64,000 bases of DNA, from positions 186,001-250,000 of IMG/VR virus record IMGVR_UViG_3300035665_000001. One strand, given 5' to 3'. Positions 55,177 to 63,924 of this stretch are shown here, piece after piece. The notes under the pieces were generated by a model. That model did no database searches. It saw nothing but the letters and a program-made list of their open reading frames with translations, and was not told the DNA's origin. Position 1 is the first letter of the stretch. Each line of letters starts with the position of its first letter. Made by a program: the position numbers and the translations under genes.

Positions 55177-55470
55177 ATGGCTAAGAAAGACACAACCACA
55201 TCTACATCTAAAAGTGCCACACCTAAAAAAAATGATTTATTCACCAAAATGAGAAAAAACATTCTTAAAAAGAATGAAGATGCAATGTTAGATTTAACGG
55301 AACCTACTGTTTGGGCATCATCTGGAAATTATGTATTAAATCATATTTTGAGTGGTAGATTTCATAGAGGTTATCCTTCTGGAAGAATTGTACAAATTTT
55401 TGGTGATTCTGGGTGTTTATTGCCACATGAAAAAATAAAAGTGTATGAATTCAAATCAAATATTGTATGA
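55177..55470 (+). CDS. recA: RecA/UvsX fragment 1: N-terminus to mid-Walker A plus 18-aa split-intein N-half
   Basis: SSGNYVLNHILSG..GYPSGRIVQIFGDSG|CLLPHEKIKVYEFKSNIV*; IntN 55414-55467. Confidence 0.85.
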   Translation: MAKKDTTTSTSKSATPKKNDLFTKMRKNILKKNEDAMLDLTEPTVWASSGNYVLNHILSGRFHRGYPSGRIVQIFGDSGCLLPHEKIKVYEFKSNIV

Positions 55471-55533
55471 AATACTTGTTAAATTATTATAAAACTAACA
55501 ATCAAAAAATAAAAAACTTTATTGGAGAACAAA

Positions 55534-56856
55534 ATGATTGAAAACAATGTTAGAGAATTAACTGATAAAGAAAAATTACTGGAATTAAAAGAATGGTATT
55601 CCTCTGATGAATTATCAAAATCCCTTGATGTTACTGAAGAAATGCTTGGTAATTTTTTAAATGATAAAAGTTCTTTTACATTAACAAATTCTGAGAAATT
55701 GAACGATTTTTTTAATAACCATGTTCATGAAAATTCAAAATTTGAAATGATTAAAAATGTTTATGGTTTGTGGGAAACTGATGAAAAACAATTTATGGTT
55801 GATACTCCTGATGGGTTTCAATTTGTTAGTGAATTTATTCATAAAGATTCAAGAAGTTGCTTTGACTTAAGAACCGATAATTTTCATATTGAATGTTCGG
55901 GTGACCATTTGATTGAAACTGATAAAGGTTGGGTGAAAACTGAAGATATTGTAGTTGGTTCAAAAGTGTTAACCCGTGTTGGTTTTGAGGAAGTTAAATC
56001 AAATGCACAACTTAGTGATAGTGATGTTTACGATATGACTGTTGAACATGATAATCATCGATATTGGGGTGGTGCCGGTATTTCATCACATAATTCTGGT
56101 AAATCTTTTCTTATGGCTAAAGCGATTGTTGAGGCTCAAAAAGAAGGTTATATGGTGGCAGTATTAGATTCGGAACAAGCGGTTTCACAGGATTATTTGA
56201 AAAAAATTGGGGTTGATTTAGACCCATCAATGTTAATGACTGTGCAGGTACAAACAGTTGAACAAACTCAAGATATGCTTCTAGAAGTTTTGGAAGGTGT
56301 TAAGGAAGAACAAGAAGCTTTAGGAAATACCAAAGAACTAAAATTATTACTGATTGTTGATTCCATTGGTATGCTTTCATCTGGAAAAGCACTAGCAAAT
56401 GCTGAAGCTGGACATCACGCGGCTGATATGGGTACTAAAGCAAAAGCATTAACCAATATGTTCAACCAAATTGTACAAAAAGTTGGTATTACTGAAACTG
56501 TTTGTTTAGTAACTAATCATGGAGCATTAGAAGTTGGAGTTATGTTCCCACAACTCAAACCAAAAGGTGGACAATGTTTAGTAGCAGGTACAAAAGTACA
56601 AACTGATAAAGGTTATAAAAATATTGAAGAAATCCAAGTTGGTGATATGGTGAGAACACACTTGAACCAAATTAAACCTGTTGAAAAATTATTTAGTTTC
56701 GATAATCTTGATATTCTTAATTTTGAATTAGAAACAGGACAAAACATTAAAATGTCGAAGGATCATAAAATGTTAGTTTTGCGAAATGGTGAAAAATTGT
56801 GGTTGGAAGCTCAATTTATAACTACTTATGATTCATTGTTAGCACTTGATGTTTAA
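55534..56856 (+). CDS. recA: RecA/UvsX fragment 2: IntC(187 aa) - ATPase core - IntN(93 aa)
   Basis: GGAG RBS; ..CSGDHL..YDMTV..ISSHN|SGKS..LDSE..IVDSIG..VTNH..KGGQ|CLVAGTKV..SKDHK. Confidence 0.9.
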   Translation: MIENNVRELTDKEKLLELKEWYSSDELSKSLDVTEEMLGNFLNDKSSFTLTNSEKLNDFFNNHVHENSKFEMIKNVYGLWETDEKQFMVDTPDGFQFVSEFIHKDSRSCFDLRTDNFHIECSGDHLIETDKGWVKTEDIVVGSKVLTRVGFEEVKSNAQLSDSDVYDMTVEHDNHRYWGGAGISSHNSGKSFLMAKAIVEAQKEGYMVAVLDSEQAVSQDYLKKIGVDLDPSMLMTVQVQTVEQTQDMLLEVLEGVKEEQEALGNTKELKLLLIVDSIGMLSSGKALANAEAGHHAADMGTKAKALTNMFNQIVQKVGITETVCLVTNHGALEVGVMFPQLKPKGGQCLVAGTKVQTDKGYKNIEEIQVGDMVRTHLNQIKPVEKLFSFDNLDILNFELETGQNIKMSKDHKMLVLRNGEKLWLEAQFITTYDSLLALDV

Positions 56857-56870
56857 TAATTAAATGGATT

Positions 56871-56901
56871 GGGGTGGATATTGAAATCCACCCCATTTTT
56901 T
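56871..56901 (+). terminator. Intrinsic terminator after RecA fragment 2
   Basis: GGGGTGGA / TCCACCCC stem followed by a T run. Confidence 0.75.
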
Positions 56902-57397
56902 TATTGTACAGCCCCATATCTAGAACCAGTAACCAACCATGTAATTGAACTGTTTCCACTTATTGATGCACCACCTGAACCACCACCTGAACCCATATCG
57001 TTGTATGATGTTTTACCACCGCCACCACCACAGATTGCACCTGCTTGACCTGTAAATGCTGAACCGCCTGTACCTGCTGTCCTACCATATGAGTTAGAAC
57101 CATTAGTTCCGTATGTCGCACCTATCCAGTTTTCAGTACCACTTCCCCATGGTGAAGCACCACCAGCACCACCTTGAGTTTGTGTACCACTGTTACCATT
57201 ACCACCAGCGGCATAACCAAAACTTGTTTCCGTTCCACCTGATGCAGGTGAATTATTCGAATCGGACTGTCTAGCAGTTGTTTCTGCAGCTAAATTAGTA
57301 GTTAAAGTTGCATCTGCAGCTTGTCTCGCAGTTACCTCATTTGCAATATTGGTAGCAACAACACTACCGATTTTTTTTTAAATATTGAATCGACCAT
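56901..57397 (-). pseudogene. Frameshifted Gly-rich tail-fibre-like ORF (about 165 aa if shifted -1 at A9)
   Basis: AGGAG RBS, then MVDSIFKKK / IGSVVATNIANEVTARQAADATLTTNLAAETTARQ..GGAGGAS..CGGGGG..GSGGGSGG..AVQ*; T9 run at 57371-57379; GC-richer than flanks; absent from the ORF track. Confidence 0.6.
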
Positions 57398-57477: not shown

Positions 57478-57789
57478 TCAAATAGTATCATTTTGCGGAA
57501 CTAAATTTCGTTCTAAAACACCCCATTTATGTAATCTTCTTAGTTCTGCAGAATGATCACGGCAGCAGGTTTTATTAAATCCAGCACCAATTGACACAAA
57601 TTTTGTTACTTTATTACATTTTGGATGTTGACATATATTGCTGTCTGGATGATAAAATAAATAAATTTTTGCATCTGTCGGTGTACCTTCAAAAAGTTTG
57701 GAATCCTCACATTCATTTAACCATAACCCAACGTTATGTTTGAATCCTTTTTCTTTGTTTTTTATAAAATATGTTTCAAAATTATTCAT
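57478..57789 (-). CDS. Truncated homing-endonuclease-like N-terminal fragment (Cys motif)
   Basis: CQHPKCNKVTKFVSIGAGFNKTCC resembles the Zn-binding N-domains of phage free-standing endonucleases; no nuclease domain. Confidence 0.4.
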   Translation of the reverse strand: MNNFETYFIKNKEKGFKHNVGLWLNECEDSKLFEGTPTDAKIYLFYHPDSNICQHPKCNKVTKFVSIGAGFNKTCCRDHSAELRRLHKWGVLERNLVPQNDTI

Positions 57790-57945: not shown

Positions 57946-58614
57946 ATGAACTCAAATGAGTTTTTAGTCGATTCAAATTATAAACCAGTTAAGATTAAAT
58001 CTATTACCCCTGTGGCAATAGAAAAAACTTATGATTTTCAAGTTGCTGACGATCATAGTTTTTTATTAGAAAATAATATAATTTCAAGTAATTGTATGGA
58101 ATTTGTACCATCAATTTCTTTGCGTGTAACTAAAGGTAAGATTAAACCCACTGATTTGGCAGAATTAGAATATTTGTATGATGGTGGAATACCAAAACAT
58201 TTGGGTGCTTTAGGGATTGTATCGAGAATTGAATTGTATAAATCCCGATTTACCCGACCTTTTAGAAAGGTACAATTGATGATTCCATACGATTTTGGAT
58301 TACCTGAATATGCGGGATTATTTGATTATCTCAAAGATAATGGTATAATTATTGAAAATGGTAGAAAAGGTTATTATAATTGTACTGAGGTACAATTTGA
58401 AAAAGATTTTACTAGAAAAGATTTTATTAAAGGTGGTTGGGCTGATTTAATTATGGAACATTTATTAGCTGAGGAAACCAAAGGTAGAATTTATGATTTT
58501 ATTATGAAATCTAGTGATGATGATGCCCGAGAAAAAGAACAAGGATTAGATTCAATTGATGACTCTTACATTGAAGATGATGATATGGATGAATCGGAAT
58601 TTAATGTTGAATAA
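57946..58614 (+). CDS. recA: RecA/UvsX fragment 3: IntC(49 aa) plus C-terminal domain with acidic tail
   Basis: AAGGAG RBS; VKIKSI..TYDFQVADDHSFLLENNIISSN|CMEFVPSISL..KSRFTRPFR. Confidence 0.88.
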   Translation: MNSNEFLVDSNYKPVKIKSITPVAIEKTYDFQVADDHSFLLENNIISSNCMEFVPSISLRVTKGKIKPTDLAELEYLYDGGIPKHLGALGIVSRIELYKSRFTRPFRKVQLMIPYDFGLPEYAGLFDYLKDNGIIIENGRKGYYNCTEVQFEKDFTRKDFIKGGWADLIMEHLLAEETKGRIYDFIMKSSDDDAREKEQGLDSIDDSYIEDDDMDESEFNVE

Positions 58615-60952: not shown

Positions 60953-62692
60953 ATGGCTAACTATATTGATTTTGCTTATTTAGGTAAAACCGCAGACCCA
61001 ACAGGCATTAGAGTGTGGGAACAAAATTATGAAACAGGTAAAATTGATGAGAAAGATTATGACATAAAAGATTATTTGTATTTTTACATTGATGCTACTG
61101 ACGAGAACAAAATTGAAAAAAATTTAATTTCTCAAAGGGGAACAAAAGTTAAAAAAGTGGTTGCAGATAACTTTAAAGTTCTTAGAAATGGTGAATCTGC
61201 GAAAATGTTTCATAGTTTAAATCTTAATACTTATGAGTCTGATATTGAACCCTTACATAAGGTAATGTTGGATAATTATGGAAAAGATCATCAAAAAGCC
61301 ACTAATTGGAATTTAGCTTTATATGATATTGAAACGGATGTTCGTATGGAGGATTCTTTTATGGGTATGCGAGCAAATGCAGATCGAGAGATAAACGCTA
61401 TTTCTGTGTGGTATTCGAAACCAAATAAATTTTATAATTTTACCGTTGTACCACCTATGCTGCGAGATGAATGGGATTTTGATACTATTGAAACTCGTGG
61501 TAATTTTGAGATTATCTATTTTGATAATGAAGAAGAAATGCTGGAAACATTTTTCACAGTTACAAAAAAACATGAAACTATGGCATTAGGTGCGTGGAAT
61601 GGGGATTTTTTCGATACCAAGTATATTTTTGATAGATGCAAAAATATTTGGAAAGAAAAAGGTGCTGCAGAACGAATGGGGCGGTTTACAAAAGTTAAAA
61701 AAACTAAAATCATGTTGGGTGAAAAAGAAGAAATTTTGGTTAGACCAATTGGTATGATTTGGTACGATTGTATGGAGGCTTATAAGAAAAATGGTCCAGA
61801 ATTAGAATCGTTTGCTCTAAATGCTGTAGTTGAACATGAAAATTTGGGAAGTAAGTTAGATTTTGAAGGGTCGTTTGAAACTTTATATCACGGAAGTAGA
61901 AAAGATAGAGATAGATTTTTAGAATTAACACCAAAGAAAAAAAGAAAAAATTTGATTAAAAAATCTAATGAGATTGGAAACTCGGTTATTTCTGATTTGG
62001 GGTTATATAGCGAATGTAAAGATATGTTGAAGATGGATACAAGCATCGAAGAATATGAATTGGAAACTCGAATTCAAATAAGTATTACTGATAGATTGGA
62101 AGAGCTTCTCAAAATGAATGAAACCAAAGAAGATTTAGGTGATATGTTTGAGGATTTTGAACGATTTGTAGTGTATAAAAAGTTAACAGATACTTATAGA
62201 CTTTTTGTTGATTATTCTAATCAGGATAGTCAACTTTTACATGATTTAGAAATGAAGTTGGAAAAATTTAAAACTCTTATGATGTTGGCACAGTATAATG
62301 TATCATCGTTTTATGATGTATTTTCTACACTCAAACAGGTTGAACAGGGTATTACTAATTTTGCTCATTTATATAATAATAAAGTTGTTATTGATCGAGA
62401 GTATGATAAGAAAAAACAGATTTATAATAAATTTGTTGATAAAGATTTGTTACAAATCAGAATCGACAATGATACTCGTATACAACCAAATGATAATCGG
62501 AAGATAAGAGAAATAAAAACTCTTTTGGAGCAAAAAAAAATACCTGGAGCCAACGTGCTTCAACCATACGTAGGATTGATTTCTTACAATGAGGCGGAAA
62601 CACCACAGTTAGCAAGAGAATTCAAATCATTAAAAAATGAATTGCGAGAAATAGATGAACAGTTAAAACAATTTGAAATGGATGAAAATTAG
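60953..62692 (+). CDS. polB: Family B DNA polymerase N-terminal (3'-5' exonuclease) subunit of a split gene
   Basis: ExoI YDIET, ExoII WNGDFFD, ExoIII YSNQD; ends PGANVLQPYVG plus a coiled coil, before polymerase motif A. Confidence 0.85.
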   Translation: MANYIDFAYLGKTADPTGIRVWEQNYETGKIDEKDYDIKDYLYFYIDATDENKIEKNLISQRGTKVKKVVADNFKVLRNGESAKMFHSLNLNTYESDIEPLHKVMLDNYGKDHQKATNWNLALYDIETDVRMEDSFMGMRANADREINAISVWYSKPNKFYNFTVVPPMLRDEWDFDTIETRGNFEIIYFDNEEEMLETFFTVTKKHETMALGAWNGDFFDTKYIFDRCKNIWKEKGAAERMGRFTKVKKTKIMLGEKEEILVRPIGMIWYDCMEAYKKNGPELESFALNAVVEHENLGSKLDFEGSFETLYHGSRKDRDRFLELTPKKKRKNLIKKSNEIGNSVISDLGLYSECKDMLKMDTSIEEYELETRIQISITDRLEELLKMNETKEDLGDMFEDFERFVVYKKLTDTYRLFVDYSNQDSQLLHDLEMKLEKFKTLMMLAQYNVSSFYDVFSTLKQVEQGITNFAHLYNNKVVIDREYDKKKQIYNKFVDKDLLQIRIDNDTRIQPNDNRKIREIKTLLEQKKIPGANVLQPYVGLISYNEAETPQLAREFKSLKNELREIDEQLKQFEMDEN

Positions 62693-63924
62693 ATTCTCTC
62701 TTTAATTAGATTCACACATTTTTCTACCATCTGTTCTATATTTTCTTTTGTTTCATAATCCCAAATTTCGATTACAGTGAACCCTTTTTTTTCAGCAGAT
62801 GCTAATTTTAATCTGTCCAATTCAAATTTTTCATCTGCTGATTTTCCTGTCCAAGGACATCTCCATCGTTCCCATTGCTCAGTTGTTAATTTTTCTTTTG
62901 ATGGGTGTACATGACTTCCATTATATTCAAAAATTAATTTTAGTGGTAAAATAGTATAATCGAATGAATGCAGTTTTGTACCTTCTTCAATTTTGTATTC
63001 ACAAGAGTTTTCAACGCCGTAAAAAATATCAGAAAAATCAATACCGTGTGCAAGTGAAAAATCAGTTAAATGTTTAAAAAATGCCAATGATTCTTTGGAA
63101 GCAATATAACCTGCATTGCTGTTTTTGTATTTTTTCCATCTGGTCAACCCTTCTTCATATCCATGAACTCTGATGAAATTCTCTTTAGTATTTGCAGATC
63201 GTTTACAAAATAGGTTGTATTTCTTTTCACCTAATTCTGTACCATACCGGGAAATGAAATTCTCCTTACTTAATTTAGATTTTTCTTTAAATTCTACCCA
63301 TTTTTGTTTTCCCAATTCTTCTCCATGCCGAAGTTTAAAATTTTCTTCGGATAGCATGCACTTTTTTTTCCATGATTTGTATTTCTTTTCACCCAATTCA
63401 ACACCATGACGTTTTTGCATTTTTTCTAAAGTTTGTCCACCTCTTGTAGAAATTGCCTTGGTAAACAATTTCAACCCTTCATCATTTCCATATTTCTTAG
63501 TGAATTTTTCTAAGGTAAGCACTTTTTTTGAATTCATTTCAGTGTATCTTCTAGATCCTTCTTCCAATCCATATTTTTCTACTTGTCCCTCTAACGTGTT
63601 ACCAATACCTTTTTTTCTGTTATTATCAAGATATTTTTTTAAACCTATCTCGTCACCATACTTTAACCTAAAATAATGTTCAGTGTTAGATTTAGTCTTT
63701 AGAAATTTTTTAAATCGGACTACTAAATTTTCTTCTAGGGTAGTGGTAGATATTAGCATACAATGAAACGAATATCTTTGTTCTTGTGTTAAATTTCCTC
63801 CCAATACTAAGTTGACGTCTTTTAATCTTTCAATCCCAATGTTTTCAAAAGTAATCCCATTCTCCTTAAAAAACTTATTGGTGAACGCTCTTTTCGTTTT
63901 TAAATTTAATTCTGAATATTTCAT
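62689..63924 (-). CDS. Free-standing homing endonuclease with Vsr-like C-terminal domain
   Basis: Many (K/R)YGxExGxxxY repeats; SFDY..IFEYNGSHVHP..GFTVIEIWD; paralog of 44807-45970. Confidence 0.75.
   Translation of the reverse strand: MKYSELNLKTKRAFTNKFFKENGITFENIGIERLKDVNLVLGGNLTQEQRYSFHCMLISTTTLEENLVVRFKKFLKTKSNTEHYFRLKYGDEIGLKKYLDNNRKKGIGNTLEGQVEKYGLEEGSRRYTEMNSKKVLTLEKFTKKYGNDEGLKLFTKAISTRGGQTLEKMQKRHGVELGEKKYKSWKKKCMLSEENFKLRHGEELGKQKWVEFKEKSKLSKENFISRYGTELGEKKYNLFCKRSANTKENFIRVHGYEEGLTRWKKYKNSNAGYIASKESLAFFKHLTDFSLAHGIDFSDIFYGVENSCEYKIEEGTKLHSFDYTILPLKLIFEYNGSHVHPSKEKLTTEQWERWRCPWTGKSADEKFELDRLKLASAEKKGFTVIEIWDYETKENIEQMVEKCVNLIKERI

Follow-up and report, generated by a model that had tools for sequence, protein, structure and literature searches.

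A predicted helix-turn-helix domain at the split site of a VidaL-like intein in the uvsX gene of a freshwater phage

What part might a helix-turn-helix (HTH) domain play when it lies exactly at the split site of an intein? This question is raised by a locus in IMG/VR record IMGVR_UViG_3300035665_000001, a 306-kb viral record (completeness estimate 85%) of which we analysed a stretch of 64,000 nucleotides (positions 186,001 to 250,000 of the record; hereafter, the window). In this freshwater phage of about 306 kb, uvsX, which encodes a RecA-like recombinase, is broken into three open reading frames (ORFs) by two split inteins. The N-terminal half (IntN) of the first intein comprises 18 amino acids (aa), and its C-terminal half (IntC) comprises 187 aa, of which residues 1-63 are predicted to form an XRE-type HTH domain. 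Taken together, the results make it likely that this is a VidaL-type split intein in the P-loop of uvsX, that the endonuclease gene between its halves has been lost, and that the HTH is an accessory module of the mobile-element side of the intein, now a relic. The VidaL-type intein and its mechanism are already known; what is new is the HTH domain at the split site.

The break in uvsX falls within the Walker A loop. ORF A (55177-55470, 97 aa) ends in ...IVQIFGDSG followed by the IntN (CLLPHEKIKVYEFKSNIV) and a TGA stop at 55468. ORF B opens with an ATG at 55534, preceded by GGAG (55524-55527), and runs to 56856; its first 187 aa terminate in ...HRYWGGAGISSHN (at length, ...NHRYWGGAGISSHN) at 56094, directly before SGKSF. 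The third uvsX ORF (57946-58614) carries UvsX profile positions 363-494. ORFs A and B share a reading frame in the window, whereas they lie in different frames in three relatives. When the pieces of uvsX were searched one by one against PHROG and Pfam profiles, UvsX profile positions 1-84 fell on ORF A and positions 83-239 on the extein part of ORF B. This continuity indicates that splicing would restore the Walker A loop (GDSG/SGKS), and together with the match of IntC to the intein VidaL (phmmer, E = 3.4e-16) it argues that the pattern at the locus did not arise by chance. The stop codons and the spacer between the ORFs are not assembly errors, since a 744-nt contig from an independent freshwater run (X7) is identical to 55201-55944, with zero differences, stops and spacer included. 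Near-identical DNA was found in lake and other freshwater metagenomes from 22 studies. In a metatranscriptome library, three contigs map to ORF B, although DNA carry-over is possible and these contigs are only a hint of its expression. An alternative genetic code was set aside because in-frame TAA stops follow the TGA and the ORFs of the window are normal under table 11. A scan for promoters and a search for TATAAATA near the locus gave nothing above chance.

The intein part of ORFs A and B carries the hallmarks of a class 1 intein. These are Cys1 (codon 55414-55416), placed directly after GDSG; a block B motif, S122-G-D-H125, in which H125 is invariant and S122 nearly so among 25 relatives; and a C-terminal H186-N187 followed by S188 as the +1 residue, all of them invariant or nearly so. 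D167 and H175 of IntC are also present and conserved. An AlphaFold model of IntC (residues 1-195; predicted local distance difference test score, pLDDT, 86) has a Hint fold, and a Foldseek search with this model returned 49 matches at E ≤ 0.001, of which all those listed are inteins or intein-like. VidaL (PDB 6VGV) came first (E = 3e-10, 33% identity) and other mini-inteins next; in the phmmer alignment, residues 73-190 of the window protein align to VidaL residues 28-145. The VidaL chain ends in ...SHASGK, and thus has the same +1 residues and the same P-loop insertion site as the window. The host gene of VidaL is reportedly UvsX; the comparison with the window covered its sequence match and the SGK at +1. 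The N-half fits the same family: the 18-aa IntN aligns with the 15-21-aa IntNs of Pseudomonas phage PA5oct, of the relatives L005, L006 and L087, and of many other IMG/VR loci; the N-half of PA5oct gp276 reads CLPETAKVKIRLSKKQS, and those of L005, L006 and L087 read CLLPHEKIKVY.. By its sequence, the intein part can thus be counted as a further, new member of the VidaL family, and its hallmarks are those of class 1. A sequence-only reading of the window had already described a split intein with an 18-aa N-half, closed by TGA and then TAA in frame, and its coordinates and sequences were correct. Kinship with the published VidaL family, the loss of a homing endonuclease gene from the gap and a second split intein in uvsX go beyond that reading.

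Among split inteins, VidaL (PDB 6VGV/6VGW; Burton et al. 2020, cited in PMC13014065) counts as ultra-short: its IntN has 16 aa, and the break, at the S1 site, comes directly after beta-strand 2 (PMC13014065). It has in common with the window Cys1, Ser+1, the SGK that follows the intein and this position of the split. The differences lie in the length of IntN (18 aa in the window), in its motif (CLLPxEKIKVYxFKS, as opposed to CLPxxAKVxIRxxKK in minimal VidaL-type inteins), in the tree, where the window falls outside the minimal clade of VidaL, PA5oct and SCTP-2, and above all in IntC. That of VidaL begins at helix alpha1, a plain VidaL-type IntC having about 120-130 aa, whereas the window IntC of 187 aa has 63 extra N-terminal residues with the HTH domain, and we therefore regard it as a variant rather than a plain member of the type. 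The PolB16 OarG intein also has a natural S1 split, with an IntN of 15 aa and an IntC of 168 aa (PMC10189870), and so resembles the window in its split site, its very short IntN and its long IntC. It differs, however, in Ser1/Ser+1 and in its host gene, a DNA polymerase, and its additional length is a disordered insertion (T84-D101) and not a domain at the split site. It was therefore rejected as a precedent for such a domain, the extra residues lying elsewhere. Both inteins (IntN of 16 and 15 aa; PMC13014065, PMC10189870) bear out the remark of the sequence-only reading that short N-halves are valued for protein semisynthesis.

Relative to VidaL, PA5oct and Salicola phage SCTP-2, the extra residues of the window IntC number 63, close to the roughly 60 aa that had been read from the sequence as XRE-like. 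A four-helix HTH is predicted for them at high confidence (pLDDT about 90; range 83-90), both in the model of the whole IntC and when the domain is folded alone, with AlphaFold2 (AF2) helices at residues 11-19, 24-31, 35-42 and 50-66. By VIA-align, the model superposes on XRE regulators with Z scores of 7.2-5 and root mean square deviations of 1.6-3.5 over 51-64 residues, the matches including Aca7 (Z 7.2), C.EcoT38IS, AcrIIA15-NTD (N-terminal domain), P22 c2 and the 434 repressor. Nearly all fold matches are XRE/Cro-C1 regulators, SinR and HipB among them, and Foldseek gave TM scores of 0.6-0.67 with probabilities of 0.98-1.0. A profile of 15 relatives matches HipB and a LuxR-type HTH domain in the PDB (E about 1e-3), and 12 of the 15 match Pfam HTH_3 (best E = 9e-6). 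The copy in the window itself scores 17.0-17.4 bits on HTH_3, below the gathering cut-off of 23. Weak matches to NUMOD1 were seen in 4 of the 15 (best E = 0.0096). On these models and matches, we take IntC residues 1-63 to be a real XRE-type HTH domain positioned exactly at the split site. An internal start at Met72, which would leave a minimal IntC, was rejected, as this Met is not conserved and the ratio of nonsynonymous to synonymous change (omega) for residues 1-63 is well below 1.

With the XRE/Cro-C1 regulators (Pfam HTH_3, HTH_26), the family shares the four-helix fold and the HTH signature, which in the relatives reads ..ELSKLLDITEATISNFLNDKS. Those regulators (HipB, the 434 repressor, controllers of restriction-modification (R-M) systems, Aca proteins) are free proteins, whereas the window HTH is embedded in an intein half; it also has few basic residues, is acidic and falls below the Pfam cut-off. 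Any DNA binding by it is putative, its net charge of -7 and the changes T38M and S40G being unfavourable indirect signs. The HTH profile showed no similarity to Vsr-like or DUF7487 endonucleases (hhalign probability <1%), and a word search for stand-alone homologues of 36-115 aa found none. Beyond the family, a search of the whole library with a profile of the insert retrieved generic tandem HTH arrays, which score by summation, and a few small XRE-like proteins, none of which placed the domain in an informative new setting; P0090 and P0138 are stand-alone look-alikes. The same search brought up P0038, in which an HTH and a Hint C-half precede a CGKT P-loop with Cys+1, so that the +1 nucleophile of HTH-bearing inteins can also be a different one. 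In the literature searched, the coverage of which was incomplete, no account was found of an HTH at the split site of an intein.

To place the locus among its relatives, we drew on a scan of viral contigs, which gave at least 140 related stretches (80 loci were fetched), on a word-based protein search, which gave 26 further relatives besides ORF B of the window, and on a metagenome scan for more close relatives, which found two. In PA5oct, the first intein is split at the same point as in the window (IntN of 17 aa), and a 478-aa Vsr-like endonuclease gene (gp275) lies between the intein halves gp276 and gp274; the annotation of the C-half ORF gp274 cites support from electrospray ionization tandem mass spectrometry (ESI-MS/MS). 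Layouts in which the halves of a split intein flank a free-standing Vsr-like/EDxHD homing endonuclease gene have been described as "fractured genes" (Dassa et al. 2009, PMC2677866). The window agrees with fractured genes and PA5oct in the gene, the insertion site and the split point. It has, however, only 63 nt between the halves in place of the endonuclease ORF that marks a fractured gene, and its IntC contains an HTH that the IntC of PA5oct lacks. UvsX of SCTP-2 (gp204) has inteins at the two sites occupied in the window, but there both are mini-inteins, unsplit and free of an HTH insert, in a single ORF of 656 aa.

Relatives 66-79% identical to the window have a Vsr-like ORF of 406-412 aa between the halves, homologous to PA5oct gp275 (BLASTP, E = 3e-8). 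It is present in P0005 and P0010, intact in L006 and L087 and a remnant in L005, and the gap runs in a series from 1.3 kb in L006, through 347 nt with only N- and C-terminal scraps of the gene in L005, to 63 nt in the window. Because close relatives have the gene in this gap, L005 retains its scraps, and the ends of the window spacer resemble those of the L005 spacer, we conclude from sequence comparison that the endonuclease gene at the window split site was deleted and 63 nt left behind. The endonuclease gene is preceded in L005, L006 and L087 by a common inverted repeat (AAATTATA-N15-TATAATTT). Of this repeat the window keeps the left arm only, and the 63-nt spacer contains no inverted repeat and no operator-like palindrome.

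Three further observations concern the split site. In the spacers of L008, L002, L039, L074 and L025, between the IntN stop and the endonuclease start, an inverted repeat encloses a TATAAATA-like motif and a ribosome-binding site, as it does in many relatives. This arrangement resembles the way in which T4 restricts homing endonuclease expression to late transcripts. In L088 (948-2333, minus strand), the gap holds a different, 461-aa ORF on the opposite strand that is not a Vsr-like endonuclease, and the split site accordingly seems to be an insertion hotspot. Moreover, on the intein tree, unsplit alleles (P0013/L089, P0015, P0017, P0019, P0020 and L028) fall among split ones, as they would if split inteins fused again once the endonuclease gene was gone, or if the gene invaded unsplit alleles time after time.

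The history of the HTH itself was followed through insert size, measured as the distance from Cys1 to the TPDG motif. Three classes emerged: minimal inteins of the VidaL type (37-53 residues), intermediate ones (81-101 residues; 81-97 in viral-contig loci, 99 and 101 in two metagenome loci) and full ones (103-115 residues), with the window at 108. In a tree of the Hint core, a single clade (support 100/99) holds all minimal inteins but two, and every intein with an insert falls on the opposite side. P0021 and L043, the two exceptions, are minimal yet belong to the insert-bearing group, and appear to have lost the insert secondarily. Full HTHs occur in several deep lineages, and reduced inserts, from which helices 2-3 have been removed, are scattered over the tree among alleles with an endonuclease gene, alleles without one and unsplit alleles. 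As the reduced inserts are spread across all these kinds of allele, the HTH appears in general to be required neither for splicing nor by the endonuclease, and is probably dispensable for both.

In some relatives, the domain has nevertheless been under strong constraint. Among L005, L006 and L087, the nearest relatives with the endonuclease gene or what remains of it, helix 2-3 is 96-100% identical at a synonymous divergence (pS) of 0.49-0.76; near-identity despite heavily diverged synonymous sites corresponds to an omega of about 0-0.02, compared with 0.08-0.17 for the Hint core and 0.05-0.11 for the extein. This points to a protein-level function of helix 2-3 in these three phages. Co-conversion or hitch-hiking with the endonuclease gene was rejected as the cause of the conservation, given the strong divergence at synonymous sites. 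The window copy behaves differently. Its insert has 10 specific changes against one in L005 (binomial P = 0.012), with no such asymmetry in the core (6 versus 4) or the extein (7 versus 6), and window-specific changes fall on 7 of 23 helix 2-3 sites compared with 13 of 221 sites elsewhere (Fisher P = 0.0009). Where the 14 other sequences of alignment A2 all have T at position 38, the window has M; S40 has become G, and the net charge of the insert is -7, compared with about 0 in relatives. In the closest neighbours of the window on the tree, the unsplit P0013 and P0017, the HTH is scrambled or deleted.

From what is known of intein chemistry, the 18-mer IntN would dock onto IntC and complete the Hint fold, and class 1 trans-splicing would then join GDSG to SGKS to form the ATP-binding loop. 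The HTH would take no part in this chemistry; as an accessory binding module, most likely for DNA, it would belong to the mobile-element side of the intein. In the window phage, where the endonuclease gene at the site has been lost, it would be a relic drifting in early decay. Several points weigh against this interpretation. The omega of the window HTH against its relatives is still 0.13-0.38, and its faster change could be adaptive retargeting and not decay. The purifying selection seen in relatives might come from keeping an inserted domain folded and not from binding function. The fold scores are modest, as is to be expected of such a small helical domain, with Z not above 7.2 and Foldseek E values no better than 0.12. 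Lastly, the link between HTH and endonuclease is drawn from a handful of alleles in one clade, while many reduced-insert alleles keep the endonuclease gene; holding only inside the small clade of the window, the association of an intact HTH with the endonuclease gene is a lead and not a result.

If the domain is still at work anywhere, it may be in relatives with an intact HTH. There it could be a functional DNA-binding domain, the IntN-IntC complex, once excised, serving as an XRE-type regulator or homing helper for the adjacent endonuclease gene, or DNA gating the docking of the 18-aa IntN; we consider this unlikely. The proposal that the HTH acts as a splicing regulator, with binding or release of DNA altering the acceptance of IntN by IntC and so tying recombinase assembly to DNA, draws on the position of the domain exactly where IntN docks, at the S1 site, and on the strong selection in some relatives. 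A conceptual precedent only is the archaeal RadA intein, whose splicing reportedly responds to single-stranded DNA. The sequence-only reading had suggested a coupling of this kind, but no evidence for it emerged: helix 2-3 is deleted with Hint core and extein intact in P0015, P0017, P0018/L091, P0019, P0020, P0021 and throughout the intermediate-insert class, splicing in the minimal VidaL clade does without an HTH, the spacer offers no operator-like palindrome, and the window copy is acidic and has lost conserved residues of helix 3, the recognition helix. We judge such regulation very unlikely. A transcription factor still working in the window, acting as precursor or excised intein on the endonuclease/uvsX operon in the manner of restriction-system controllers, would suit the XRE-type fold, whose closest structures include R-M controller proteins and Aca repressors, as well as the inverted repeat of L005, L006 and L087 and the intact HTH found in the clade of the window where the endonuclease gene is present. 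The repeat is AT-rich, however, and may be mere promoter sequence; the window retains one arm of it and no palindrome, many endonuclease-bearing alleles have no HTH, and the conserved residues have been lost specifically in the lineage of the window. This, too, is improbable in our view.

The other suggestion of the sequence-only reading, that the HTH is the DNA-binding remainder of an endonuclease domain once nested in frame in the intein, could appeal to the weak matches to NUMOD1, a nuclease-associated HTH, and to the repeated shrinkage of the insert, as in decaying endonuclease domains. It was not borne out. L006 and L087 have a separate, intact Vsr-like ORF between the halves and still carry the HTH in the C-half; the endonucleases at the site are free-standing and unrelated to the HTH; the split site is not where intein endonuclease domains are usually nested; and the stretches read by eye (no profile was used), including the largest insert (P0027, about 112 aa), contain no nuclease motif. 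The strong purifying selection in L005, L006 and L087 would also be unfitting for a dead remnant, and we hold this origin to be very improbable. A purely structural role, in which the domain maintains the solubility of IntC while its Hint fold is incomplete, or covers the IntN groove before the 18-mer binds, is in keeping with the residues conserved across all lineages, which are those of the hydrophobic core of helices 1 and 4 (L18, F59, F60, H63), and with the retention of just these two helices in reduced inserts. Against this, L005, L006 and L087 have frozen surface residues in helix 2-3 as well, minimal split inteins (VidaL, PA5oct) manage without any such domain, and unsplit alleles still carry remnants of it, so that we give this role little credence. 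That the gene is simply dead, the three in-frame stops marking a decaying uvsX pseudogene in which no splicing occurs, could be argued further from the loss or truncation of both associated endonuclease genes. All catalytic intein residues are intact, however; with the window included, core and extein have omega values of 0.05-0.28; a ribosome-binding site and a proper start codon are in place; the split is kept in many diverged phages, among them the cultured PA5oct with its ESI-MS/MS-supported gp274; and the identical sequence occurs in samples of different studies. A dead gene is thus extremely unlikely, and a trans-splicing VidaL-type intein with a relic HTH is the reading that we retain.

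Downstream of the first intein, ORF B continues into the second split intein of uvsX (Table 1), so that three ORFs and two trans-splicing reactions would be required to make the recombinase. In the window, 1.1 kb separates the halves of the second intein, and this gap holds a DUF7487 remnant; a full-length DUF7487 gene fills it in L005 (410 aa), L087 and L088. Given the terminator-like hairpin after ORF B, the third piece of uvsX is probably transcribed separately. Other selfish elements lie nearby. An intact Vsr-like endonuclease paralogue of 411 aa (62689-63924, minus strand; phrog_22677) is encoded 7 kb downstream, with another elsewhere in the genome, and the adjoining ORF 60953-62692 matches only the N-terminal part of DNA polymerase; the polymerase gene near 60953-63924 is probably another gene broken by a homing endonuclease. 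Across the 306-kb record (e.g., C1:64456-65277, 108484-110084 and 262788-272887), inteins are matched at several further places and DUF7487 at no fewer than 10, and some of these matches contain internal stops. The phage genome is unusually rich in selfish elements.

Table 1. Features of the split uvsX locus (positions in the window).
Feature	Position	Strand	Basis or remark
N-extein of uvsX, 79 aa; C-terminal ...IVQIFGDSG is the first half of the Walker A loop	55177..55413	+	phrog_97 UvsX-like recombinase, profile positions 1-84, E = 6.5e-10
IntN, 18 aa, CLLPHEKIKVYEFKSNIV, and TGA stop (55468-55470)	55414..55470	+	would supply Cys1 and strands beta1-beta2; aligns with N-halves of relatives
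Spacer, 63 nt; in-frame TAA at 55480 and 55510; GGAG at 55524-55527	55471..55533	+	homing endonuclease gene of 1.2-1.3 kb here in relatives
Predicted XRE-type helix-turn-helix domain at the split site, IntC residues 1-63	55534..55722	+	AF2 helices, fold and profile matches
Hint core of IntC, residues 64-187: helix alpha1, block B S122-x-x-H125, block F D167/H175, terminal H186-N187	55723..56094	+	VidaL 6VGV match; Pfam PT-HINT
Middle extein of uvsX, 160 aa; opens with SGKSF (Ser+1, second half of Walker A); RecA core	56095..56574	+	PF00154 RecA, E = 2.8e-11; phrog_97 positions 83-239
N-half of second, canonically split intein, 93 aa, CLVAGTKV..., and stop	56575..56856 (coding to 56853)	+	Pfam Hint_2 from residue 348, Intein_splicing
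Terminator-like hairpin, strong, 10 pairs then T run, directly after ORF B	56870-56895	+	in gap of second intein
Glycine-rich open frame, 158 codons, no start codon; G+C visibly above surroundings; in gap of second intein	56901-57377	-	between end of ORF B and DUF7487 remnant
Remnant, 103 aa, of DUF7487 endonuclease-like gene, in gap of second intein	57478..57789	-	54% identical to first 91 aa of the 410-aa L005 ORF, E = 2e-34
C-half of second intein, 49 aa, ...NIISSN, then Cys+1	57946..58092	+	contiguous counterpart in Salicola phage SCTP-2 gp204
C-extein of uvsX, 173 aa, and stop	58093..58614	+	phrog_97 positions 363-494; phrog_18112 recombinase

Natural N-halves of ultra-short length are in demand for protein semisynthesis and for the editing of proteins in live cells, and this locus and its roughly 140 metagenomic relatives represent many new IntN/IntC pairs of the VidaL family, with IntNs of 15-34 aa. 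These loci also suggest that the S1 split site tolerates a folded domain of 63 aa fused to the N-terminus of IntC, a property that would be of use in design; DNA-gated docking of IntN, if true, would make this a naturally ligand-responsive split intein of the ultra-short kind. The situation is an ordinary one for the phage, that of a recombinase gene with selfish elements. As a family, however, these inteins form a natural series in which the endonuclease gene is present, reduced to scraps or gone, the intein split or unsplit, and the HTH intact, trimmed or absent, and this series could serve to test how split inteins originate, whether they re-fuse and what purpose an accessory DNA-binding domain has in them.

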